64,000 bases of DNA from Oikopleura dioica (Eukaryota > Animalia > Chordata), in contig OU015569.1 in the NCBI GenBank assembly GCA_907165135.1, positions 9,424,001 to 9,488,000 on the forward strand, in the 5' to 3' direction. The position numbers and the translations under genes are program-made. Under the pieces are notes generated by a model. That model did no database searches and was not told where the DNA came from. It saw nothing but the letters and a program-made list of their open reading frames with translations. Positions within the stretch are counted from its first letter, which is position 1, and the number at the start of each line of letters is the position of its first letter. Below, piece by piece: positions 7,977 through 60,726 of this stretch.

Positions 7977-8305
7977 TAAAAATCTCTAAATTCTCTCTTA
8001 GAAGAGAACATCTAGTAAAAAAACAAGCCAGCAGGTTGCGTATTTCGTAGAAGAGAGTTTTTTTCTGGCAAGACAAGTCCATCCGAGACATATTTTAAGA
8101 ACTTCCGCAAGTTACGTACTATTTTTTGAACGCGAAAGATCTTGTAAATACCTCTTCCCGGGATAGTATTAACCGCTTTATCTACAGATTTCATGATTGT
8201 AAAAGCGGAAATTAATGCTTTCAGCTGTAAGCAATTAATAAAATGGATATAAAAGTATGTAAGGGGGAAATTGATCACTCTGAAATACAGCATTAAAATG
8301 AAGCT

Positions 8306-8700
8306 TTTTCTAGTTTATTTGTGAGCTACCGGTTTCGGATATTAATCCTTCATCAGGCTAACAAGTAAAATAAACATATATTCCGTTGAAAAGTAAGTTA
8401 CCGTGAGGCGGACAAAATCACGACTGAGGTGAAAGCGAGAAAACAACAAAGATCTAATCGTAACAGAAATGGCAAAAGGGCGCCAAGAATGGATTGATGT
8501 ATGCCCCTTTTGCCATTTCTGTTACGATTAGATCTTTGTTGTTTTCTCGCTTTCACCTCAGTCGTGATTTTGTCCGCCTCACGGTAACTTACTTTTCAAC
8601 GGAATATATGTTTATTGTACTTTCTAGCCTGATGAAGGATTAATATCTGAAACCGGAAGCTCACAAATAAACCAGAAAATGCCAACGGTCAACTAGAGAA
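8306..8700. repeat. Long fold-back palindrome (about 175-bp arms, about 21-nt loop) flanked by a 12-bp direct repeat
   Basis: 8306-8481 is the reverse complement of 8503-8679 with about 6 mismatches and 1 indel. TAAAATGAAGCT occurs at 8294-8305 and 8701-8712. Confidence 0.9.
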
Positions 8701-8738: not shown

Positions 8739-9235
8739 CGGGAGAATAATTCTGTGCACAGAACTATTCTGTGAAAAACAGAATTATTCTCACGATAACA
8801 CCCCCCCTTTCCGGGAGAATAATTCTGTGAAAAAATAATTTTTTTTAGCGAAAACAACTATTATTCTGCGAATGCAGAAGTTGTTTGCTGCCAAAAATGA
8901 GTCCCAGCGGTAGAAAAAGACTGCCCCTGCCAACCCAATGAGTTCTCTATCAGAAAATGCGCGCAAGGGCCGTAGGCCCGTAGCGTGCTTCATAGCCTCT
9001 TCGGTTCAGCTTCTACTAACAGACTATCATTGTTATAGATTGTATTTGGCTGCTAGATTCAAAGACCGACTGAAGTCAATCCTTTTCCACTCTTAGACAT
9101 GAGTTCCAGAGTATTATAGGCTATCTACGACATAATCAAAGTGAATTTTGCTAAGCTCGACACAGAATAGTTCTGTTTTTTCACAGAATAGTTCTGTTTC
9201 CACAGAATAGTTCTGTACACAGAATTATTCTCCCG
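8739..9235. mobile_element. MITE-like element with inverted ends built from CACAGAA(T/C)A(G/A)TTCTG units
   Basis: CGGGAGAATAATTCTGTGCACAGAACTATTCT at 8739 is the near-perfect inverse of AGAATAGTTCTGTACACAGAATTATTCTCCCG ending at 9235. Units are repeated subterminally. No clear TSD. Confidence 0.7.
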
Positions 9236-18371: not shown

Positions 18372-20913
18372 ATGCAGAGCTCGAACACAGGCTTCGGAAT
18401 CGGAGCGAACGCGCTTCAAAGTCAGCTTCAACTGCTTCGCCAGGGTGGTGCGGGCACTTTAGGTACGCAAGGTAAATTGATTTTTAAGAAAGCATTCTAA
18501 CGCATCCTTTCCTAGGAATGCCACTAGATAGATCTCCGAGGACACCGAAATGCGCACGATGCCGCAATCACGGAGTAGTATCAGCCCTCAAAGGACACAA
18601 ACGCTTCTGTAGATGGAAGGTAACACATTTGGATTGTTATAAGAAAGCATAAATTAGCTTCAAATTGAGCATGAATGTTTAGGACTGCCAATGTGCGAAG
18701 TGTTCATTGATCGCGGAACGTCAACGAGTTATGGCGGCACAGGTAATTCTTCGATCTTCACTTGGCATAACAAGAGTGTTCGCATTTTGTGAGCTTCTCT
18801 CAAGTGGATATCAGTTCCAATGAGAGTGTACACAACGTTAATAGAATTTGCTCAGCTTGTTAGAAACCTTGTTGAAAGACAATTGTTGTCACCTCTTCAG
18901 AGCAATTTGACTCAAGAAATACTAGCCCTACTTTCGTATAGAATATTTACAATAGATTTTTAGTTAGAGTATAGCATCATCGTTTAAGTTGAGATTATAA
19001 AATTATATGAATTAGTTTTACTTTATGTTAAATCATTTAATTTCAACAGAAGGTCTATTTATTCAAGGGATTACCGAAACGGCAATTTGAAGCCAAGAAA
19101 TCGGCCCAGATCAAACGTATATTCTCTCCAGTTCCCAAGAGCAGAAATTGTGACAAAGGGAATTAAGTTTTTGTGGAAACGGACTCAATAAAAACAACTT
19201 TTACTTTCCTCGAGCAGCCAACAAAAGTTCCATCAAGCAACTATCGAAACTAACGTTTGTTTTGCCAAGCTGAGCACACTATTTTCTTCAATATGATAAT
19301 GAAAAGACGCTTAACTATTACGCTCAAAGCGATTCTCGAGGCAAGCCAAGTATCGTATATCAGCCACTGAAACTCACTCTGCGCCTTTCTTCTGAAATTG
19401 AGCAGTCCTTGAATTTCAGTGTAAAATTTTCGATTCCACAAAAAATATTGGCAGTCCTAATGTCGCGATGATTTTAGGTAGCTCTTCGAAGACAACAAGC
19501 GCAAGAAGAGAATGAAGCGAGACAGCTGCAAATTTTGATGGCATCGGCAAGTCAAGCTCAACCAGTTCCGACCGCTTCTCAGAGACTGAACTTGTCTCCA
19601 CCGGCACTTCCAGCTATTGAAATGAATCTCGATCAAAGCCAAGCCAATGAGTCCACCAAAAAGAGGAAGCGATCAGCTGAGAACGACAGCTCTCCTGAGA
19701 TTGGTAAGTCTAGAAATGTTTGGGATGATCCCCGTAGTGCTAGGGGTGAATTGAAGATCATCCGCCCGGATGACTCGATTAGAATAAGAATTGAAGAAAA
19801 GTGTTGAGTGAGCTGTCGCTTCTGTCCTTCGCGAACTGATTTCGCGGGCGAGCGAGCTTTCAGTAGTCTTCGGCGGCAATTGTCGTGTAAATTTAACGGA
19901 TTAACATACTTATTGGGCGCGTATAATAATTCACAGCTATTTTTAATCCACCCCCGTGGTGTGATTCAATTAGAAGTAGTGTAAGAACACAGCTCTGAAA
20001 GGTAATCGATTTCGAAAAAGAAATTCAAATTTGAAATTTCAATGAGCCGATTAGCAAGAGAGCTAGAGACACTTCCTGAAGCTAATCAAAACTTTCTGAA
20101 TAATAAACAACGCTCAGATTCGAATCATTCGATGCCCTGTTACAGTGGACTTGAACTTTAGTTTCTTTCATTGATTGACTTTTTCTAGCGCTCAAACGTC
20201 CCTACGAAGAGCAAGCGAATCATCAAGCAGAACCAAATCCAAACGAAACTGAAGCGACCAAGCAACCGTCTGAGTTTCAGTTGCAGCTTATAACGCTTCA
20301 AAAATGTTTCCCACAGAAACCAAAAGCGCTGCTTCTAAAAGCACTTCAAGGTTTCCCCAAAAAGCCCTATTCATCTAACTGTAGCTAATACTAGATCATA
20401 ACGGAAACATCGTCAACGTGCTAAATTCTCTGGCAGAAACTTCTCCGCCATCGTCGACCAGTTCCTCGAATGCGCCACTGTCAGCTCCACTCGATATTCA
20501 AGTACCAGAAGAGCGGGTCAATTCTATTGTGCAAAACGTCGTCTCTTCGTCCGCTGTGGCGCTGCCCCCACGAACGGTGCCCTCGCTTTTCCCGAGATTC
20601 GATCAACTGCCAATGCTGCCAGGTTTCCCACAATTGCGTGGATTTAAGTATGTTTTCTCTCGCTGTCCATGTATAAACTTTTCTTCCAGTCCTCTGTTCC
20701 GAGCCGGTGTGCCGCCCTTATCAATGTATCCTGCGCGACATTTTTTCCATTCTTTTATGCCACCAAAGTAAGAAAAAAACATTATTATCCGACACTCCTA
20801 TTTTTAGTCTCCCTCATGGTTCTCCAGTTTCTGAAGACTACGCTCAAATCGAAGAGCAGCCGGATTCTCCAGAGAAAGACATCAAATCGTCTCCAAACAG
20901 CAACGAAGAATAA
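18372..20913 (+). CDS. dmrt: Doublesex/mab-3 related transcription factor, DMRTA-type
   Basis: Spliced DM domain [30 protein letters not shown]|[20 protein letters not shown]|[17 protein letters not shown], with a downstream DMA-like segment [18 protein letters not shown]. Confidence 0.95.
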
Positions 20914-31400: not shown

Positions 31401-34400
31401 GTTCGCAGGTTTTGGCCGGGTAGTGCTGTACGCAAATGTACGCGGTGGTGGATTGCGTTCATCCCGATGGTAGATTTTGCGCAGGACTTTCAATTTTGAG
31501 AATTTATGTTCGTGCCCACGAACAAGCCCTCGCCCGAGTTTTCCGCGAGCATAGCCCTGAAGACCAACAGTTCTCCGTAGTATGCATTCGTGGATCGAGT
31601 TATGCAATGTCAGTAAAGTTATATGAAGGATTTTAGTCTGGAGATTAGTGTCGGCCATCGTAGTGAGATCATGCTTGTACAACGTAACAAGCAAGGATTC
31701 TAGCCAAGCACATCGAAGCTCTGGCTGAAGATGAATTAACGAGTAGGTCGGCATGTTGTCTCCTGTTGGATCCGACTCAGACGCAGAATACAACAGCAAA
31801 TTGAGAATGAATGACATCAGATGTCCAGATAGTTCGATGTTTGAATCCAGTATCTTCGGTAAATGAAGCAGAAACGGTGGAAACACAACACATTCGCGCA
31901 AATTTGTGGGTGAGAAATTTGAAGCGAATTGGCTTATATTCGTAAAACCAAAAGCACAATAAAGTGCTTAGAAAAGATGCGAAACTGTTTCGTGTCGACG
32001 TCACTATTATCTCCAGCAATGATAAAGCGACAAACACACCCAACGAGTTCTGTAAGAGTTATTTGGTCATTTTCTTCGATCGTAGTGCCTTGGTTGATGT
32101 CCATTTTTCGGCAATAGAGTAGCAGCCCGTCGGAATCCCATTGGGAGACTGTCGGTTTTCCATCGAAGTAGCGTAGTGCTGATTTGAAAAAGACGTTACG
32201 GGATAAAGCAGTTTTAGAGGGATGCAGAAATTTAGTCCGAGATCTTTGCAGACTTGTGCTTCTAAAATTGAATCAGTAGATATAAACATGATTAAGAGCT
32301 GTCTCACCTACTGAAAACAGAATGAGGCTTTGGTTGAAAAACCCCCAGTTCAACAATTTTGCATCGGGGCGAAGCAAATGAAGCTGCTCGATTCTTTTAA
32401 AAATGATGCAGCGATCACGAAGAATATTCCGATACTGAAACTCGAAGCAGGAACAGATCGCCAGAAGACTCTTTTTCGAAAATGTATCACATAAAAACTT
32501 GACTCTTCTGTTCAGCGAGGGAACTGGGGATGACGAAAGGTCCAGAAGAGCAAAAACGCAGTAACTAACTGCATAGCAAACAACTGGGCATCTTATGATT
32601 GCTGAAGGTTCGACATGTTGAAGCAAGGAAGCAAGCTTGTTTGCCAGATCAAATTGCTTTTCCCACGGTTGATTGAGATAACTTTCATCCACGAGCTGGA
32701 TAAACTCTTCTGGTGCGCGAAAAATGTAAATGTAGGAGAGCATAATCTTCGCAGCATGCTTCGACTCCCCATCATTCGAGCCTAGTTCCGTCCACAGCGT
32801 TCTGATAATATCTCGGTGATGCGTTGACAGAATATGTGATTCCGGAAGAGCGCGCAAATTTTCCAAAATCGAGGTCTTTGTTGTTATCATTTCTAGTAAA
32901 TGCCCAAATTGTTCAGCAACTTCTCCATTTTGGGAGTTCACAGTTTGCAAGACTTCTTGCGCTTCAGCGAAAAGCTGGAACCAGAGTTCAAAAACCCCGC
33001 GATTTGCCCGGGCACAGGCGGGCGCGGGCTCGGAATGGAAAAATGGTCGGGGGCTCAGGCGGGCGCGGGCACAAAATTGATGATGCTCGGGGGCTCAGGT
33101 GGGCGCGGGCCCGAAACTGAAGGTGCCCGCGGGCTTACGCGGGCGCGGGCGAGAAATTGAAGGTGCCCGCGGGCTCACGCGGGCGCGGGCCCTTGCCCTC
33201 CTGCTCGCGCCCGGCCGCGCCCGCGAGTAGAAAGTGACCAAATTTCAATCGGTATTTTCAGCTTCAATTCGATGACTTGAATAAGTTAACCGTCAAAAAA
33301 TATGCAAAAATGGTATAAAAAGTTCGAAAATTTGCGAAAATCTTGATTTAGACCAAATTTTGAGCCAATTTTAGGGGTTATTTTAAAAGAGAACTCTTTC
33401 ACGGGTTTCCGACAAAAGTCTCAATTTTTATTTAAAATTTCAAAGTTTTCGGCGAAAATTTCTTCTTCTCTTACGAAAACTGGCCGCGGCCTCTGACGGG
33501 CTCGGGCGCTTGAGCCCGCGAGGCCCGGGGGAGCAGGCGGGCAGCGTGCCCGCGCCCGGCCGGCCGCCGCTCCCCTGCCCGGGAGCCGAAAATTTTTGAA
33601 CTCTGGCTGGAACACGATTGTAGATGCTTCCGTATCGCCGCAGATATCTGTCTTTTTCTTGAAGAAAATGTCCCAAATAAGTTCGTTGATTAGTGCTAGC
33701 GTTGATGAGTGCCGATCCGAAATCGTGATTTCTGTTTTTAGCTGTTTTAGTGTTCGCAAGCAAATCTTGAGCAACACAACTGGCGGGAGACTTGACGAGG
33801 TGATTTTGATTTGATTATTCATAACAGAAAACATTGTATGAATCTGTGATTCTGTTGTTTCTGCGCTGTCCAATGCTTTTTCGAAGATCTTCTGTATGAT
33901 AGGAAGAGGGATGAAAACTGAGAGCCTGTTTACCGCAACTAAGTACTTTAGCGCCGTTGCAATGTTTGTGGACTGGAGAAATGACCAAATCTCGGCAAGG
34001 GAAAATGGCATGCTTACCAAGTCAGTGTCGAATAATTTCCATAGCGATTCTTCAAGAAGGCGTATTTTGAATTCCTTTGGGTATGTTATATCTATAAGAT
34101 CCTCGCAATAGAGAGGGATAGTTTTGTTCCAATCGTCGTGAGTAAGAAGTCCAAACGATCCTATCATTAGCAAGCTCTCTAGTCGGTTACAAAGCTTCGT
34201 GGGAGTGTCTTCATCTGACTCCCAATATCCAAGCCTCTGCATCTCGGGCGGAGGCGAAGGATGCAGTGACAGAAGAAATGATTTGGCGAAATGCTTCTTG
34301 TATTCCTTAACCCACGGTAAAAGAGTCTGATTTTTCAAGTTGTCGACGACTAAATCGTTTCCCGTTGCATCAGACGAGACTGTCCGAGTTGTGTAGAGAA

Positions 34401-47332: not shown

Positions 47333-50300
47333 ATGTCGTTTTCGAAGTTGCCACGAGTTTTGATATCCGAGGAAGCTTCCAAAGCAAAGAACCCTGGCCC
47401 AGGCGACTATGATCCAAAAGAAATCGACCGCTCAATCGCAGGTACCCTTGGTCTACTAGGATTTCTATAAAGCTTTTCTAGTGAGGATCGCGCCGAAGGG
47501 TACCCAGCAAGCAAAGAGATCGTTGGCTACTAAACCCAACTATCTCAGCAAGAAAGACGTATCCGGTGTAAGGAAGAAGCTGGATAGCAATGTCATGATT
47601 TCTAAAGTCCGACTCCAGCAGCTTACTGTGCAAGCTCAGCAATTCAAGGAAGGAGGAAAAATAATTCAAATTTATTATGTTCTTCGATTACTGTAGTAAG
47701 AATATCTTCTTTCAACCTCTTGAAAGGATGACAACGATATTCTGAAGAAGACTCTGGATAGCGTCGAAAAGGAGCGAAACCAAAGCTGGACACAGCTCAA
47801 AGAAAAAAAGGCCTCTCTAAAAGAGATGGAAGCCAGGCTCGAATTCTACGAGCAGCAAAAAGTTGAGCTTGAGAACGAGCTTGCATCGAAAACCGAATTA
47901 TTGGATAAAGAAAAAGAACGAGCGAACTCTGTTGGCGACACCCTAGCTGAAATGAAGAGCAAGTTCTCGGCGCTAACACTCGATTCCGAGTCACAGGAAG
48001 AAGAAAAAAGTAGACTCACTGCGGACTTATCCATCAAAATAGCTTCGTTGGAAAAAGCACAAAGCGAGATTGAGCACCTGAAGCAGGTTATTACAGAGCT
48101 GCGTTCAAGGATTGACTTCAACGAGAAAGAGCAAAGGGAAACGACGCAAAGATGTCTAGGAATGGAGTTAAAGCTGGCTAACTTTCTTATTTGTATTAAA
48201 TATGGAAGCAAAAATGTTGCGGTAGAACGGAAACAATTTAACTCTTGATAGACCTTGAGCTCGAAATCACGGAATGCAAGATTGACCTCCAGAATGCTCG
48301 ACAATCCTTCGCCGAGTTGGAAACTGACTACTCAATCAAAGATCAAAAGCATACCGCCACCATCGAATCTTTGAAACGCGAACTTGAGACTGAAAAATGC
48401 AAATACGAAACTCAAGTAGCAAAATTAGAGAGCGACCGCGTACGCGATGCTGAACAACACCAGTGCGAAGTTGTGGCACTCCAGACTCAGTTAGACAACT
48501 GGGAAGACATCTCGAGAAATTACGAGACTGAACAGAAAAAAAATCTTGCGGATATCGTCGCGCTTCAGGAGGAACTAGGCGTTCTGACAAAGGATTTCGA
48601 GAATTGCAAAGCTGACCGCGCAATTCTAATGAAACAAGTTGAAGTCGGCAACGAATTCGAGCTAAAGTGCGAGGCACTGCTAGAAGAGAATGCCGAACTG
48701 CAATTGAATCTGCACGATACAAGAGAACAAATGAAAGAGCTCGTCGAGCAGCAAGTAACATACGAGGACGAACTGGAGGAGCATTTCGAAGCTCTCATGC
48801 GAAATGTGGAAGGTTAATTCCATGAATCATTTAAATACATCTATTCAAAGCGTTTTTAGATCTGGACGAAGCCAAGTCAAAACTATCGGAACTAGAGAAC
48901 GAGCGAGACGTAATTGTCCGCGAATTGCAAATGTCCAAAGAAGCAAACGAATCTGTTGAGGCAGAACTGCAGAAGAGAATCAGCCAGGTCAACGACTCAG
49001 TTGTCGGTGGACTGATCAAAAAAGATGCTAGCGATGAGAAATACAACCGGTTGAAATCATCCGCGATGAAACAAGAAAAGGTCTTCTACGAGAAGATGGA
49101 AGGATTGACCAAAAAAATGAAAGAAGAAGAACGTCGTTTCAAGCAAATTATCGCTGATAGAGATGCCTTGCTCAAGTACAAAGACGACGAAAACACTCGT
49201 TTGCGGGTAATAATTGCATTCTTTTGCTTTTGTTTATTCACGAGTTGTAGAAAGCTGAATTTGAGAAGAAACAGTTGCACGAGATGGAGGTCAAAGAGCT
49301 CAAGCTTGCCCTTGAGAATGCCAGGGCAGAACAGAGTTTGAAATTTTCGAGACTCGCGAGCGGCTCACTTGAGAGCGGGCGAGCACGAGCATGATGCTCT
49401 TTGTGCTCCCGAGCGCATATATTTCAGCGTTCGCGCTCTTTGTGCTCGCGAGCACATTTCATTACGCGCTCTCGCTCTCCTGGCTCCCGAGCACTGGTCA
49501 AATTTTGCTCTCGCTCGATTGGCTCCCGAGCTGAAAAATCTGACTCGCGAGCAGCTTTCAAGAGCCTAAAATGATTCGACGACCCCGTAACTACTTCCAA
49601 ATGAGTCCCTCTCACAGGAGTTAGCACTTGGCGGTGGGCATCTTTTATCTGTTTACTCTCGGCTTTTCGCGTTCCGCTGCCGAGATTACGGACCTAATGA
49701 AGCTTGCACAAATCGGAAACACGAAAAATTGATCCACGAGAGAAATTTATCCATGAAAATGAATAATAACGCAAAAAATTGTTCCTTTAATTTTGCTCGC
49801 GAGCCGCTCGTGAGTCAATTCCATGGCGAGCACGAGAGCAGCCGCTCCCGCTCGTCTAGCTCCCGAGCATTGCCGACATATGCGCTCGTGCTCTCCGCGC
49901 TCGCGAGCGGTTTCAAATTTGGGCTCGCGCTCTTTTGGCTCTCGAGCAACTTTATTTTCATGCTCCCGCTCCCCTGCTCTCAGAGCAATGATAAATTTTT
50001 GCTCTCGCTCTTTGCGCTCGCGAGCATTTGCGAGCATTTCAAACTCTGGGGCAGAACTCGATCTTCAAACTCAACGAAACAATAATTTTGCAGCGCGCGA
50101 TGAACTAGCAACTAAAGTGGACGACGCAATTATAGAAGAGTTCAACGCCGAGAAAAATGTACTTGTTGAGCAAAACCAAAACTTACAAAAGGAGCTTGGG
50201 TCTTGATAAAAAAACATTTGTAATTTCTCATCATCGTCATCGCCTAATTAATTGATTTGTGTGTTCATATTTTGAGTGTTGTAGTGACCCGTCTAACAGA

Positions 50301-50476
50301 GTCTGAATGAAACTGAGCGCAAGTTGTCGTCCACGATGGGCCACACTAATCACTTGCAAAAAATCAAGTACACGGAGCGCTTACGCCAGGAAAACACCAA
50401 TTTCCGGGAGAAGAATGCTGAACTCGAGCGCCAAGTCAAGAAATTGAATGCGCGCATCAAGGTTCTAACAAACTAA
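47333..50476 (+). CDS. HMMR: Hyaluronan-mediated motility receptor (RHAMM), spindle coiled-coil protein
   Basis: N-terminus MSFSKLP...PGPGDYDPK, a long coiled coil and C-terminal MGHTNHLQKIKYTERLRQEN matching the HMMR C-terminal motif. Confidence 0.88.
49332..50048. mobile_element. Non-autonomous hAT-like MITE (717 bp) inserted in an HMMR coding exon
   Basis: Perfect 13-bp TIR CAGAGTTTGAAAT/ATTTCAAACTCTG, 8-bp TSD GGGCAGAA at 49324-49331 and 50049-50056, and CTCGCG/GAGC subterminal repeats. Confidence 0.95.
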
Positions 50477-51934
50477 CCAATTTATTTGATTATCTATAAG
50501 TCTTTTCTTCTTGGCAATTTGAGTTACTTCTCAAACTCTGCTAAGTAGAAGATTATTAGATACTAACACTAACCTGGATATTTCTTAGGCGCTAGATACA
50601 TCTATTATTGCTGGATCTGAGCACTTCTTCCCTCAATCATCGAAAAACTAACCTATCTCAGGGTCTTCACTTGCACCACATTCCATTTATTTCTACTGCC
50701 CATTAGACAACATTCTTTTGCTTCACTAACCAACCTTCCCTTAAAGGTTCCAAAGAATAAAACCCATGTTCACACAATGAATCTGAATGTAAGACCTTAA
50801 CTCTAAGGGTTTACGTCAACTTTCTTCTATCAAATTTATTTCGACAAGCAGGATTTGTTTTCATCGCAGGAGCAATTTCAATTCAAACGCTTTTCTATGA
50901 TTGTGGCGAAGCTCTATTTTGTCATTTGTATTAAAAAAACATTCAAAAAGCCGTAACAATCTCCATCTGGACAAGAGCAGCTTTTCATTCGCCCTTATAG
51001 AGAGTTTGTCGACGCAAGTCTGCAGATCATTGCAATCAGGCATGTTTAAAAATCGAAGATAAAGATTCAACTAACTCTCTCCTTCGTCGAGGAATCCAGT
51101 TCTCTTGCAAGTCTTTCGAAGGATAGATGTTTCGTATTTTCTGCGTTTTTGAATGTCGATGTTCAACCTAAGGAGAAACTAAAAATGTATAATTTCCGCA
51201 AAGCAGGATAAGTACAATAAGAATAGAGAAAATAAACAATCCAACGACGAAGCCCATAATTATTCTCTGCCATTTAGGAAATTGAAGTAAGAAGTCGGAC
51301 ATCGCCTAAATCGACGAGTAAAACGAGACAAGTTTCAACTACTTCTCGATAGAGAGTACTTGTCTTGTTAGAATACACGTTTACCCATCCTCAGCGAATA
51401 AATAATTGAAAACAGGGATTTTTTTCACTTCTTATCTTCATACATAATAATTAACTACCAATAATCTCATGCGATAATTTTAAAATAACTAGAAAATATG
51501 AAAAATATAAATACTGCTCCACAGGTTAAAGAATTCCGAAATTTTTTGACAGAATATTCATGTATGTAAAGAACAAAACGACGATGGAATATGCTCGACA
51601 AGTGGAGACTGCTCGGGCAGGAGAACAAATCCTCATTATCTCCGGTATCAAAATCTTCTGACATGTTCGGAGTTTATCTGCGGCAGTGATCGTCGCACGG
51701 CGGGAAGATAATTATCTTCCTAACGCCCGAGCCATCGCTAAAAGGAATATTCGAAGCTCAGAAACCGACTCGCGAGATCAGAAGTCGCCATGCGGAGTCC
51801 TTTCAGGCCGAGATTTTATATTTTTGACATATTTTACAATTTACAATTAGAGAAATCATAGATGATTAGTTTCAGAAAAAACGTTTGAATAGAGAGAGTG
51901 CGACTTTAAAAGAGATAACAAAAATAGAAACAGT

Positions 51935-54900
51935 TTGAACCTCGCTTACAGTAGGACTTTCAAATGGTTTCTCCTGTGGATAGGGATTGAGACGATAGGT
52001 AGATATGTCGACCCGAACGAGCTTCTTAACCAACGACCGATTCTGGCTATTGAAAAAACAGTTGTACCAGGTATGTACCATCGCAGTCTTAAAATGACTT
52101 CTTACTTCGCATGGTTAAGGTGATAGGCCATGGACAAACGAAGACCTGGCTTACTATTTGTACGATAATGCACCCGCCGATTACAACGTGAAAGTCCTTG
52201 GGTTTACAGACATCTCTGGATACTCGGATTCTAGCGGAGGACGTGTGCGTCGTGGATCGGAGAGCAAGAAAAAAGCAGCAAAGAAAGCTGCCAAACTTGC
52301 TAAAGAAGAAGACGGCGGCTCTAAAAAGAAGAAGAAGAAAAAGTCTGAAGCAACTTCTACCTCAGCGGCAGCAACTGAAACATCAACCACCACTTCCACA
52401 TCCACTACCAGTACTACCAAAACAAGTACTACAACAACAAGTACTACAACAACAACCACAACAACTACCACAACAACTACCACAACAACCACCACAACAA
52501 CCACCACAACAACCACCACAACAACCACAACAACAACCACAACAACTACAACCACAACTACTACAACCACAACTACTACAACCACAACTACTACAACTAC
52601 TACTACTACAACAACCACAACAACGACTTCTACAACATCTACAACTACGACCAGTACAAATACTACCACCACAACAACTTCTACCTCTACGACAACACCA
52701 GCTACTACACCTAAGAAAAAGAAATGGAAGAAAGAGCAAAAGAAAAAGAAAAAAGCTGATCGTGGCAAGAAAAAGAAAAACAAGATCACTTTCGACGCTC
52801 TCGACATTGCTTCTCGGCGATCACTTTGGGCCCAAAAGAAGCAAGAACAGACTCCAGTCAATGCCGATTACTACAGTTACGCTATTATCCTGGAGATCAG
52901 CGTCAATAGAGATTATAGCAGCTTTGCTTACGCTACCCTCGAAAAATTCATGGATTTCATTGGCACGCGTTCTGCTTCCCCTGAAATTGCTTTCGAAGGT
53001 GAAAACGAGTTTCTTGAATACGCAGACAGCTGTGGAATTAATGTCGATGATTACGTTGATGACACTGAATACTTTATCGAAGTTCTGGAAATCGACTCTA
53101 CTGTCGTTGATGTTGATGATCTTATCGCAGTTCGTGATGCTTTGTACAGTGATCTTCCAGAAAGCTTTATGGTGGAAGTTATTCAGCTTGCTGAGGTCAT
53201 TGACCAAGAGACAATGTGGATGAGTGGAAACGAAACAGAGTCCTCTTACGTCGTTGTTGCTGCTGTCACCTTCCCAGAAGTCAGCTTTGCTCGACACGAT
53301 GCTGACTTGCTTGCGTTCCGAACATACATGTACATGAGTGGACGTGGTGTTCTTACAAAATTTGACGCTGCTTTCTTCGACACTGTGGAAGAGCTTGACC
53401 TTGCAGATGCTATTCCAGATTATGAAAATCCTTGCGATAGTCATATCTGCTCCGGTGATTTGGTTTGCAAACTCACTGATTCTACAGAAAGCATGACTCC
53501 TGTCCCATACTGTGGTTGCCCAGATTACACTGTGTCTATCAATGCCGCCAGTGATCAATGTGTGACTGCAGGCCAATTTGTGGAAACTTTGGTTGTCGAA
53601 AGTTTGACTGCTTTGACTCCAGATGCAATTTTCGACGAGTTTTACAGTCAATTCACAGCTTATGGTATTCGAATCAAAGCTTTCGACTATAAGGAGGGCA
53701 ACTCTACTACGTGGTCTATGGACGGTATGGACTCCATTTGCGTGTTGGCAGAGATATCAGATCTAAGCGAAACTGATGGCTCTTTTGGAGGATTTGTAGA
53801 TGCTCTCTCAGCAGAAGGACGAGACGTTTATTTGGACACTGATGCTCAATTTTATCTTGACATAAGTCTTTGTGGTCTTGACTGGACCCAAGAGGAATGC
53901 CCAGTTAATCAAGAACCAAGCAAGTGTCCTCAGTGTGATGACACCTGTGAGGATATTTCCATGGGTGGCGGACATGACATGTGCGGTGAGCAATGCGAAG
54001 GAGGCTGTGCATGCAAGCCTGGCTATGCTCGATACCAGGTGACTGACGATGGCGAAAAGACTGACGCTATGTGCATCCCAATCAATCAGTGTCCTCTCGA
54101 GTGTGGTGCTAACTCTAAGTACTCCGCATGCGAATACGGCTGTGAAGCTACTTGCGCAGATCCATTCAAAATTTCTTGCCGTGAACAAGCATCTTCTGTC
54201 TTTGGCAAAAACAACGGATGCGAAGCTCGGTGCGTCTGTGACGATGGTTTCATCAAGAACGAATCCGGTGAATGCGTTCCGATGACTGACTGTCTTACAT
54301 GTCCATCGAACTCTGTCGATGCAGAGTGCTTTGACGAATGTGCCGCTACCTGTGACGAGCCTGATTTTACATGCACTGAGTATCCCACTTCTTGTACAGC
54401 TGGATGTGACTGTAGCGATGGATACGTTAAGGATTTTTTCCATCCTTTCGCCCCATGTGTCCCCGTTGATGAATGTGATACTACCTTCGAGTGTCCAGAA
54501 TTTATGATTCCTGATAGTTGCGCGAACAATGCTTGCTATGATACCTGCGAGTCGTGGAGTCTTGACAACGTTAACGTTTGCCCCGCTCAACGATATGCCG
54601 AGTGTGAGATGGGCTGTGTCTGCGCCCCCGGTTACGTTCGACACTCCGAAAAAGATGACAAATGTATCCCTACTTATGAATGTAATGCTGTGACAAAATC
54701 TCTTGACTCAATTGATTTCGTCTATGTCGGCGAATCCTCCACTATTGACGCCGCTGATCTTGAAGCACTCAACGCGATCGCGGATGAGTTTACGGAAGAT
54801 GTTGTTCTCAAAATTTCATCTTTCGGAGTTGAGACAAGCGAACAAGTTAGATACGGAGATTCGGAATATTTCTTCGCTGCACGATATGTCTTCCCATCCA

Positions 54901-57900
54901 GTTCTCCTCATATTTATGATGATATCTATGGCAGCCTTGAAGTTATTATGGATTTTTCTAGTGCATACATTAAAATCGAAGGAACATCTGAGTTCCAACA
55001 GTGCGTCACTGGTTATGAGCTTCTGTTTGAGTGTATTTACGACGACTGTCGAGGTGAGCTTTGTCTTCAACCAAGCACCTCTTGTCCCGACGGAACATAT
55101 TGCCGAGAGACGTCTGAATTCGATCTTGCTGGTGAACCACTCGGTGAAGTCAGCTATGAGTGTGAGTGTGATATTGAAGGTGAAACACTCACCGCTGCTG
55201 ACACTTGTGTCGCTGGTAAATTAAACCGATTCACTGTGCTTGAACTGGTCCAACAAAATTTCTGCGCTTTCAGGCATTACCCACAATCTGAACTCATTGC
55301 GATGGCTGAAGATGTTCTTTACGGCGATCTTCCAGAAGGTCTCAAGTTCAATGTTCTTAACGTAGCGATCAATTTTAAACGATGCGCGCAACTTGATGCT
55401 GCTCGACGAAACTTTGCCAGAACCATCCATTTCGCTCCTTTTGAAGCCGTCATTGTTTCGAAACGTAAAAATATCCCAGGCAGTCAACTGGTCTTGAATG
55501 AATGGATCGAGAATACCGGAAGACGAGTCTATGATTCTAAAGATGCTGAATCTATGGTCATTGTTGAAAATAACGACTTGTGGGAGGTTATTCCGCTCAC
55601 TCCAGACGTTGAATGTCCTAGGGGAGAAGTTTTCAATGTTTGTGCTTCCGACGCTTGTCAGTCAACTTGTGAAAATCACGCCAATGAGGATGCGTGTTCC
55701 GACCCCGACACTGACTGCGCGGGGCCGGGTGTCTGTGCTTGTCCTGATGGCATGGCTCGAATAATCGATGATGGACCGTGTGTTTTCATTGACAGTTGTC
55801 CACACGTTAAGTGTAATGAAGACCCTGGACTCGAGTTCAGCTACGATACCTTGTCTTGTGAAGATATTGACGAATGTGCTGACGGTACAGTCTGTGGTGA
55901 TGCTGAGTGTGTCAATACTTTTGGATCTTTCTACTGCGAGTGTGATGAGGGTTATCAATTCAACGAGCAGGACGACACTTGTGAGGATATCAACGAATGC
56001 GCTATGCGTGAGGTACTCTGTGGTGATTTTACCGAGTGTGAAAACACTGATGGTAGCTACATCTGCACTTGTGGCGACGGATTCAACTGGGATGAGAGCG
56101 GAGCTTGTTCGAATGTTAACGAATGCCGATTGAACACCGACGATTGCGACGAAACACAATTCTGCGTCGACATTCCTGGTGGATATTTGTGCCCCTGCTT
56201 GCCAGGTTACGAAGAAAGCGGTTCTTCTTGCGCTGATATTGACGAGTGTCTTTTCGACTATGTCTGTGATAGTGATGACAATATGAATTGTGAGAACACT
56301 GACGGCTCCTACGAATGCGTCTGCGAAGACGGTTACATATACAATGGCGAGTCATGTCAAAACATTGATGAATGCGCAATCGGAAAGAGCGAGTGCGATC
56401 ATCGGGCTGGCGAAGACTGTGTTGATAATGAAGGAAGTTATGATTGTGTCTGTGCTCAAGGTTTCAGCCGAAACGAAACCTCTGATGATTGCGATGACAT
56501 CAATGAGTGCGAAAATGATGATTTCGATGTTTGCGGACAAGGAACTGTCTGTGTTAATCTACCTGGCTCATACGAGTGCCGATGTAACGATGGATACGCT
56601 CTCGTTAACAACCGATTCCTCCAAGATGTTTGCGTCGACATCGATGAATGCAACTTGAACCTGGATAACTGCAACCGAGAGAGCTATTGCCTCAATACTG
56701 ATGGATCCTTTGAGTGTCATTGCCGAGAAGGCTATGTTGGCAAGGATAATATCTGTCGAGACATTGACGAATGTAACACTGCTGCTAATGACTGCGATTG
56801 GCCAGATGTGTGCTTAAATACAGTCGGCAGTTTCGAGTGCGTCTGTGCCTTCGGATTCGAAGATGTAGGCGGTGAGTGCGTTGATATTAACGAGTGCGAA
56901 GTTGGAACAACGAACTGCGACTATGCATCTGGTGCACAGTGCAATAACGTCGACGGAGGTTTTACTTGTTACTGCTCGAGCGGTCTTACAGGTCTCGGTG
57001 TCATTGGATCTCCATGCGAGCCCTCACCATGCGAAGAAAATGAAGTCGAAAATGATTGTGCAAACAGAGAGTGCGTCATTGACTGTCTTTCGGAGCTCAA
57101 TAACAAACCACCAACATGTCCTGACGATACCGTTGAATGCCAAACCGGGTGCTTATGTGCGGGCGGTTTTGTTCGTAAATTCCCTGGAGGTCCCTGCGTT
57201 GAACTCGCTACTTGCGAATGTCCGCCATCTTACGAACTTACAGCTAATGGATGTGAAGACATTGATGAATGTGACGCTGGTACCCACGGTTGTGTTGAAG
57301 AGAACCAGTATTGTTACAATACTATCGGTAGCTACATGTGCAAATGTGAGGACGGTTACAGATTCAACATGGGAAGCTGCACTGATGTCAATGAGTGTCA
57401 GACTGGTGAACCTTGTGGTCCACATGGAATTTGCACGAATACAGATGGCGACTTTTCATGTGCTTGCAAAGATGGTTACGAGCTTGATACTACCACTGGA
57501 ATCGATTGTTATGATATTGATGAATGTGACGACGGTGTTTGTGGAGATGATAAATGCACAAATACTGATGGAGGTTTCCAGTGCAGTTGTGCAGCTGGAT
57601 ATGCGATGTCTGATGACGGCTGTGTAGATGTCGACGAATGTACTATTATCAACGACTGTAATCGAAATTCTGAATGTGTCAACACAGAAGGAAGCTACGA
57701 GTGCATCTGTTTTGACGGATATGAATTGAGAGAAAACAAGGAGGGTAATATGAAGTGTCTTAACGCAGACGAGTGCGAGCTTGGCACTTCTGACTGTGAT
57801 GAGATCACTGAGTTCTGTAAAGATACTCTTGGCTCATACGAATGTCTTTGCCAAGTCGGTTTCGAACATGACTCATCCGATGAATGCGTTGACGTTGACG

Positions 57901-60726
57901 AATGTGGTTTCGACGATAATCTCTGTCCATCGAACACAGTTTGTGAAAACACTGTCGGAAGTTTCATGTGTCTATGTAACAATGAAGGTTTAATGTGGGA
58001 TGACAAAAGAAACGATGCGTTGATCGCGATGAGTGCAAAGAAGGCAGTCATATGTGTGATCTTGACAACGACGCTGCTTGCGTCAACTACTGGGGCGGAT
58101 ACGAGTGCGCCTGTCCAGGTGATCTTATCGGTGTCGGTACCGTTGATGATCCTTGCCGATTCCCTTGTGATTCGGAAACATCTGAGTACCTTGCTTGCGA
58201 GGACTTTGACGAGGGAACCCTTACATGCTTCCACACTTGCGAGACATACAAGTGGGAGACTGAAGAAATATGTCTCGACGTTTGCATTGATGGATGCAAC
58301 TGCCTTGATGGATTTGTCAAGACAAACGGAACTTTTGAATCTGCTTGTGTACCCGAAGAAGAGTGCCCAGATCCAGAATGTCCAGAAAATATGATTTTCT
58401 CGACCTGCATGTGTTCTCCAAGTTGTGACAATGAGGATGCCTTCTGTTTTGACGATGACGATGAAGATTGCGTCCCCGGCTGTGTCTGTGAAGAAGGATA
58501 CATTTTGGCTGACGAATCCGAAAATGCTCTTTGCATTCCCAAAGAAGATTGCTCCATTCCTATTGTTGAATGTGGTGCTAACGAAATCTATGTTGAGCAG
58601 CTGGACGTTTGTTTCGCAACTTGTGAAACCTTCAAGCTTTTCACAGATCCGGATTACTGTGATGGAACAGAGACTCTGTATGAAGGATGTGTTTGTGCAG
58701 AAGGCTACGTCCGTTTAACACCTGATCCAAACTCACCGTGTATCCCTGAAGAATCCTGTTCAAATGACCACGATGGCGAATCATGTCGACACTTTAACTT
58801 TATTGAAATTATTGAAGAAACAGACCTCCCTCTTCGAGTGGATATCGACAACCGATACACCTGGAACTACCTCGTCTCTCTTCGTTTCGATAAGTTTGAT
58901 TCTCTTGTCGATAATATTTACGTCGTCGATATTAAAGAGATTGAGCCAGATCTTGAATTTGGTGACAGCGATGGGGATGTTGTAGAGTACGCTATTTCTT
59001 ATCAGATTGTTGATTGTCCACGTCTCGATATGGACGAAATTGAGTTCATGATTCGTTACATGAGAAGCCGGGAAGATCTTGATCTCTACCCAGAATGGAA
59101 ACGAATGTTCCACAAAATCAAGGATACTATGGACCTTTACTTCCCTTGCTACACTGACGAATGCGCTAACGACAGATTCTCGTGCGATGTCTGGACCGAA
59201 ATGGTTGCTTGTCCAACTCAAGAACAGCCAACTTGCCAAGAACAGATGGACTCGCTCGTTGAATGGCAAAACGAAGAACTCTTTAACATTATTTTCGGAC
59301 GAATGGAAGAGAACTGCAAAAAGCAATGTGTATGCAGACCGGGTTACTTCCGGGAAGATAATTCCACAACTGCCGAATGCGTTCCATACCATAAATGTTT
59401 CGGTGGATGTCCAAAGTTCTCCAAGTTCCAAGAGCAGACAAAACTCTGCGTTCCTTACTGCGACGATGCAATTGCACTCAATTGCACCTTAATGACTGCC
59501 GACATCGATAATTTCTCCGAAGTTGAAGACGCCCTTGCCATCCCTGGTTGCAAATGCAGAAAAGGATACATCCGAGAATTCGACTCTCCATTCTCTCCTT
59601 GTGTTCCCGAGGAAGAATGTGTGAAGCCTGATCTTCCTTGCGAAGATGAGAACTCTCACTGGGAATGGGAAGCACCAGCTTGCCCAGCTTCCTGCAGATA
59701 TCCAGATGGTCACGAAGGCGCATCATGTCACGAAAAGAAGAAGGGTTATTGCGTTTGCAATGAGGGTTTTGTCAAGGAGAAGAACAAAAGAGACAGTAAG
59801 TGCGTTACCCTTGGAACTTGTTACGCTGATCAATGCAGAAAAGGAGAACAATATGCTTCCCCAGTCCCCAGGTAAAGACTTTATCTGAGATAAATTGTAT
59901 AAATTTCGTAAATTGCAGATGTTTCGACGATTGTCGATCATGGGCGTACGAAAGCGAAGAGCTCCAATACTGCCACGACGAGGACAAAGATCTCACTCAC
60001 GGTTGCGTATGCGAGGAAGGATACGTCCGTAAAAATGGCAACGATTACCTTCTTGGCTTCAAGGGAGGCAAATGCGTACCAACTGACCGATGTAAAAAGC
60101 CCGATACTGATACGGTTGAAGCGCTTGCTCAGTTGAGCACTCTTCCAGGCAGGGGTTTCGCTAGATTCTTGAGTTGAACGCAAAAGAATTGATTTAGCAT
60201 GTTCGTTTTATGAGGAAATATATTGACCCTTCGATAAGCTGATGTTAGCCTGAGCGATCCAAGCACATGGGACTTAATTATTGAGCTTCTTGGACTGGAC
60301 AAGAAATCGATAAAGATTCTTGGTCTCGATCAAAAATCACGAACTATCCGCCGTCGATGGTCTGCTACATATCAGCGCGTCATGCAAGAAGGGCTATTTG
60401 ACGTTGTCATGCAGGGTGTTGTCGAAACTACTGATAGTGAAACAACTCCAACTGCATCTCTACAAGAACAGATGGAAGCTCAGATCACGGCGGCCGTCGA
60501 ATCGGCCGGAGGTACCGCCACTACTGACGAGGCCGCTGTCGAAGCTGCTGCTACTGATCTCGGTGTCACTATCCCAGAAGCTCCAGCGCCAACTAAGCGT
60601 GAGTTTTTAAGCGTTGATTGTTTTTGTTTTTTTTTTTTGTCGCATTTTCCAGAAAAAGAGCACAAATTTGTAAGAATAGCATTGTGGGTATTAATTCATA
60701 GAAAAATATATTTCAATAAAGTATAA
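51935..60726 (+). CDS. Giant secreted mucin-like / TIL / calcium-binding EGF protein (candidate house or ECM protein), one frameshift at about 58005
   Basis: Hydrophobic N-terminal segment, a Thr tract of about 100 residues, about 13 TIL-like Cys modules, 16 D(I/V)(D/N)EC-type cbEGF repeats and low-Cys acidic spacer domains. Start and final exon are approximate. Confidence 0.85.
52381..52710 (+). repeat. Imperfect ACN codon array encoding poly-Thr
   Basis: ACA/ACC/ACT runs with sub-blocks such as ACAACCACC and ACTACTACAACCACA. Confidence 0.95.

Follow-up and report, generated by a model that had tools for sequence, protein, structure and literature searches.

A very young hAT-like MITE in a coding exon of an HMMR-like gene of Oikopleura dioica, possibly removed as a newborn intron

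In the Oikopleura dioica haplotype behind the assembly, a hAT-like MITE has very recently inserted into exon 6 of an HMMR-like gene, duplicating the target sequence GGGCAGAA. The insertion allele is polymorphic, and the exon is intact in other animals of the lineage. Judging from the 64,000-nucleotide stretch of DNA that was analysed (hereafter, the window), it is quite possible, if short of probable, that the element is lost from some of the transcripts as a newborn intron, spliced from a donor in its terminal inverted repeat (TIR) to the first AG beyond the element. Splicing at the particular junction 49335/50055, taken on its own, appears rather doubtful on the same grounds.

The insertion and its empty sites

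The element and its target-site duplication (TSD) comprise the following features, given in window coordinates.

49324–49331, no strand, TSD copy 1, GGGCAGAA
49332–50048, no strand, hAT-like MITE of 717 bp and 51% GC, its subterminal repeat arrays GC-rich and its centre AT-richer
49332–49349, plus strand, left TIR, CAGAGTTTGAAATTTTCG
49429–49539, no strand, left subterminal array, three units of ~39 nt with palindromes of the GCTCGCGAGC type
49844–50033, no strand, right subterminal array, five units of ~39 nt with palindromes of the GCTCGCGAGC type
50031–50048, minus strand, right TIR
50049–50056, no strand, TSD copy 2, GGGCAGAA, containing the candidate acceptor AG at 50053–50054

An earlier reading of the sequence alone had placed the MITE and its duplication at 49324–50056, and these coordinates proved correct to the base. 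The two duplication copies are identical at 8/8 positions, and the termini are CAGAGTTTGAAAT on both strands, with a TIR that is perfect over 13/13 nt and matches at 16/18 over 18 nt. This transposon signature is far above chance level. The MITE is a non-autonomous hAT-type DNA transposon belonging to a high-copy family. With hAT MITEs whose ends are of the hobo, Ac, Hermes and Tol2 type, it shares the 8-bp TSD, the CAGAG termini (typical of hobo, Hermes and Tol2), the small size, the lack of a long ORF (those within the element reach at most 118 amino acids) and the presence of multiple copies; with the hAT target preference nTnnnnAn, the GGGCAGAA duplication agrees at position 7 only. Four more family copies, 88%–94% identical, were found on marine-metagenome contigs retrieved by means of an ORF inside the MITE, and its terminal repeat was shared by every observable end of further copies (L121–L123). 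In the contigs of two DNA runs, word depth over the MITE was 27–369 times the depth of the flanks, a ratio that serves as a rough indicator only. A scan of metagenomes with the TIR pattern returned 120 loci, all of them chance matches, blastn with the element returned none, and an Rfam scan of the MITE was uninformative. Separately, TCTCAAACTCTG at 50529–50540, in the 3′ untranslated region of the gene, looks like a solo right end of the MITE apart from one mismatch; the number of such near-matches (6, against 3.5 expected) does not exceed what chance allows.

Excising the MITE and one duplication copy yields the open frame ...ENARAELDLQTQ..., from which the sequence-only reading had concluded that the element landed in coding sequence. 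This conclusion was borne out by empty-site alleles and by relatives in which the exon is unbroken. The empty-site alleles, which that reading had asked for, are present in five DNA data sets, namely two runs and three metagenome contigs. Contigs of the DNA runs X29, filed under the same species label, and X28, filed under a different one, join 49323 to 50049, skipping 725 nt. The metagenome contigs L127–L129 have just one GGGCAGAA, with CTCGATC immediately after it, and flanks that are 96%–99% identical to the window. In two more distantly related contigs, L125 and L126, whose exon 6 proteins are 91% and 78% identical, respectively, exon 6 is continuous and introns 5 and 6 are kept; the older intron at the insertion position that the earlier reading had allowed for is thus absent from these relatives, which lack the MITE. 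Since empty sites occur in the same lineage and the exon is uninterrupted in distant relatives, the insertion is young and polymorphic and does not represent an old intron.

The filled site was found in none of the five other data sets, and an exact look-up in public assemblies returned no record of the ORF that fuses element and exon in the filled allele. An assembly artefact, with the element not truly at this locus, would fit the lack of a filled site in any other data set examined, but the exact empty-site sequence is duplicated perfectly over 8 bp around intact terminal repeats, which is the signature of transposition and not of misassembly, and we consider an artefact extremely improbable. 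Absence of the allele from the five data sets is expected for a deleterious insertion as well. As a candidate proof that other animals carry the insertion, the word shares of 0.63–0.74 in runs X25–X27 were rejected, given that words from other family copies can account for them.

None of the RNA runs searched contained the locus. Two oligo-dT bulk RNA runs from 2026 (X4 and X5), bearing the same species label, gave 11–12 partial reads there with 90%–95% identity. The unaligned end of these reads matched the metagenome contig L126 exactly, and L126 is only 71%–73% identical to the window at the DNA level. Both RNA runs therefore derive from another cryptic lineage, 71%–73% identical to the one studied here, and species labels hide cryptic species among the O. 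dioica runs.

The window also holds other elements and repeats. A second hAT-like MITE lies at 32982–33605 (624 bp; 32974–33613 with its TSDs), with TSD GCTGGAAC and ends CAGAGTTCAAAAA. It belongs to a different family from the MITE at 49332–50048, though the two share CAGAGTT ends and are built alike. This second MITE breaks a long, putatively UNC79-like open frame on the minus strand, and its removal restores the frame; pairing its GT donor with the AG of its TSD would add 5 nt and shift the frame, and a GA donor alone would keep it. Elsewhere, at L123:5–298 (minus strand), a 98-codon open frame without a Pfam hit reaches the end of a copy of the same family as the exon 6 MITE, and this copy may be another exonic insertion. 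A near-perfect hairpin at 8303–8682 in the window (arms of 178 nt that are 96% complementary, separated by 24 nt) and the adjoining 39-nt inverted repeats at 8739–9235 are probably other foldback or MITE-like elements, and a perfect 14-nt inverted pair, TTAGGACTGCCAAT, with its copies 754 nt apart at 18679–19460, may mark another MITE. Positions 52158–58394 hold a single open frame of 2078 codons, in which many EGF-like cysteine repeats come after a long poly-threonine tract, an arrangement resembling mucin or fibrillin.

The interrupted gene

The gene model is as follows. Intron ends were predicted from the continuity of the frame and from their conservation in L125–L127, and no RNA was used.

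47333–50476, plus strand, HMMR-like coiled-coil gene, seven predicted exons
47442–47481, 47628–47726, 48193–48251, 48813–48859, 49207–49250 and 50200–50301, plus strand, predicted introns of the gene
49251–49331, plus strand, left part of exon 6, 27 codons, C-terminal end ...ENARAE
50057–50199, plus strand, right part of exon 6, LDLQTQRNNN...QKELG

When the predicted exons 3–7 were joined without the element, they gave a stop-free frame of 543 codons, and no further lesion was found in this part of the gene. Comparison with the wild allele L127, a Tara Oceans contig, revealed 29 synonymous and 16 non-synonymous codon differences (dN/dS = 0.14), and the protein encoded by exons 6 and 7 is identical between the two alleles. 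These comparisons indicate that the HMMR-like gene is under purifying selection. The top Pfam family for the last exon, which contains a GH-N-LQKIK motif, was HMMR_C (PF15908; E = 1.2e-4, 22.8 bits); because this score lies under the cut-off of 28.6, the gene is referred to as HMMR-like. A Pfam scan of exon 6 alone gave zero hits, a HMMER search of exon 4 against 1.8 billion representatives gave a single unspecific coiled-coil match, and an ESM Atlas search with the last exon and Pfam scans of exon 6 from the relatives were uninformative.

The insertion point itself appears to accommodate changes in length. At L125:214–234, in the nearest of the diverged relatives, four extra codons lie exactly where the MITE inserted in the window (ELTSLNQAQTQ vs. 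ELDLQTQ, at 49331/50057), so a length change is tolerated there. The particular Gln-Lys insertion that splicing would create, for which the sequence-only reading had suggested aligning orthologues, was not recovered: no relative has QK, and exon 6 of both L125 and L126 lacks it.

Candidate splice sites and the fate of the transcript

Three sites are relevant to how the interrupted exon would be read, in addition to the acceptor AG in the second duplication copy.

49336–49337, plus strand, candidate splice donor GT at TIR position 5, AGA/GTTTGA
49392–49394, plus strand, TGA, first in-frame stop when the element is not removed
50092–50093, plus strand, alternative in-frame acceptor AG, TTTTGCAG/CG; with donor 49336, 13 residues would be replaced by Q-T

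Under the newborn-intron reading, the MITE would be transcribed within the pre-mRNA, and the spliceosome would remove it as an intron of ~0.7 kb in at least some transcripts. The donor would be the GT at TIR position 5, and since the terminal repeat is symmetrical, a GT donor is available whichever way the element is oriented. The acceptor would be the first AG past the element, which lies inside the second duplication copy by chance. The predicted product is the protein with two additional residues (Gln-Lys) at an indel-tolerant spot. Transcripts left unspliced would reach a stop after 20 element-encoded codons and lose the conserved C-terminal motif.

The sites proposed for this removal hold up on paper. 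The GT at 49336 and the AG at 50053–50054, put forward earlier as a canonical pair, do delimit a 719-nt interval whose removal is in frame and adds Gln-Lys, the join of 49335 to 50055 giving ...ENARAEQKLDLQTQ..., and the retained element does stop the frame, as had also been stated, at TGA 49392–49394. A GA donor at 49334 gives +4 nt, and the GT-AG pair is the sole minimal in-frame solution. In-frame removability as such does not exceed chance, which would yield it in about one case in four to one in three: 131 of the 546 pairs of the form G[T/C/A]..AG around the MITE (24%) are in frame and stop-free, as are 8 of the 13 AGs between 49980 and 50190 when paired with donor 49336. Of the TIR donor and the TSD acceptor from which the earlier reading assembled the intron, the donor alone recurs in other copies. 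The donor GT at TIR position 5 is conserved in the family, at each observed end and in either orientation, whereas the TSDs of the other copies have no consistent AG; in the three that could be compared (CTTCTGT(G/C), TCCAAACT and CCCTCAAG), a small sample, AG occurs at no constant position. The acceptor is therefore an accident of the target, and the donor alone is a property of the element.

The strength of the candidate signals was judged against the six predicted introns of the HMMR-like gene. The donor AGA/GTTTGA matches the general donor consensus at 4/9 positions, compared with 3–7/9 in these introns, and 10/18 positions upstream of the acceptor at 50053–50054 are pyrimidines, compared with 9–13/18. 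Both sites thus appear no weaker than those of the gene's own introns, which argues for a newborn intron, as do the purifying selection on the gene, the indel-tolerant spot and the absence from the MITE of both AATAAA and ATTAAA. Splice-site matrices trained on ORF-junction candidates from the window gave no sensible consensus in two attempts.

Other properties of the insert argue against a newborn intron, namely its length, its GC content, a donor buried in a stem and internal GT and AG dinucleotides that could act as cryptic sites (17 GT and 39 AG in the interior of the MITE). The would-be intron is 719 nt long with 51% GC, whereas the native introns of the gene are 40–102 nt long with 26%–38% GC, so that it would be 7–18 times longer than these. 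The RNA of the MITE is predicted to fold into a single extended hairpin (−269.5 kcal/mol, z = −6.8), with the candidate donor 4 bp into a perfect 13-bp stem of this very stable structure.

These properties would also fit the view that the insertion produced a loss-of-function or strongly hypomorphic allele, the element not being productively spliced. Transcripts would then retain the element, or splice at cryptic sites within it, and run into the stop at 49392; they would be degraded or yield a protein without the C-terminal HMMR motif, and the allele would persist only because it is young and heterozygous in a cultured line. A long, GC-rich and strongly structured insert unlike the native introns, a premature stop upon retention, numerous internal GT and AG and the lack of the insertion in all five other data sets are consistent with such an allele. 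The same is true of the gene-dense genome, where young random insertions often fall in exons and where a second exonic MITE lies in the same 64-kb window. Still, the edges of the element carry signals equal to those of native introns and allow a minimal in-frame change, and the constraint on the gene would make a homozygous null costly. In addition, larvaceans are documented to intronise MITEs, and 11%–12% of O. dioica introns are non-GT-AG (PMC8008620), which points to a permissive spliceosome in this species. On balance, a loss-of-function or strongly hypomorphic allele seems to us a realistic possibility that leans towards doubtful. Skipping of the whole of exon 6 was considered as a rescue and rejected, as it shifts the frame.

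Productive removal might also proceed through sites other than 49335/50055. For example, the TIR donor might be joined to TTTTGCAG at 50092–50093, which looks the stronger acceptor, or splicing might use an upstream exonic donor at 49290 or an internal acceptor at 49985 or 50024. In favour of this are the number of AGs between 49980 and 50190 with which donor 49336 is compatible and a T-run immediately before the CAG at the acceptor ending at 50093. However, the protein would then lose conserved residues or gain ones encoded by the element; NNNxxxRDEL...VDDAII is a conserved block in the relatives, and the first AG after the element is the acceptor that ends at 50054. We regard removal through these other sites as quite unlikely.

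Comparison with known transposon-derived introns

Intron gain is seldom caught in the act in animals. Here, one lineage holds both an intact exon and a freshly interrupted one, in a constrained cell-division gene and with a generation time of 4 days. Because both alleles occur in a culturable chordate, the value of the case is that of a test case: whether a freshly inserted exonic MITE is spliced out from the start or creates a null allele bears on the many lineage-specific, non-canonical introns of Oikopleura. More broadly, the CAGAGTT-ended hAT MITEs of Okinawa O. dioica might constitute an active animal introner-like system, in which a good share of fresh exonic insertions, including the one in the window, would be spliced out at once. 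We consider this generalisation unlikely, if far from negligible. The symmetrical ends of such elements would offer GA and GT donors in either orientation and, if the system is real, brand-new introns would be segregating as presence/absence alleles in essential genes, in a chordate amenable to culture and crossing.

The underlying mechanism is already known from introners and from larvacean MITE introns, and the present case alone is a further example of a known idea. That transposons make introns to which element and duplication contribute one splice site each is established (reviewed in PMC11282704). For Oikopleura itself, indirect evidence of transposon-derived introns is among the material cited in PMC3443670, and tunicates do not feature in the introner survey PMC9860276.

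Among the introners of Micromonas pusilla and Aureococcus, as that review describes them, copies that are spliced as introns number in the thousands (Huff, Zilberman and Roy 2016, via PMC11282704). The O. dioica element shares with them the nature of a short, non-autonomous transposon with TIRs and TSDs that sits in coding sequence, with splice sites split between element and target, the arrangement proposed in the earlier reading. A conserved splice site at the end of the element, as in introners, is present here as the GT at TIR position 5. In introners, however, the TSD is 3 bp long and supplies a splice site systematically, according to the same review, whereas here it is 8 bp long, carries no consistent AG among the four copies, which form a small sample, and splicing is a candidate only.

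A parallel from the same animal class is Fritillaria borealis, in which lineage-specific, non-canonical introns with TIRs and TSDs are described as MITE-derived (Henriet et al. 2019, via PMC11282704 and PMC13326754). According to these sources, exon insertions in F. borealis are tolerated through an altered spliceosome, and the resulting introns have AG-AC or AG-AT ends and are fixed. The exon 6 MITE does not have non-GT-AG ends of this type: its candidate intron is canonical GT-AG, polymorphic and far longer, and represents a candidate only.
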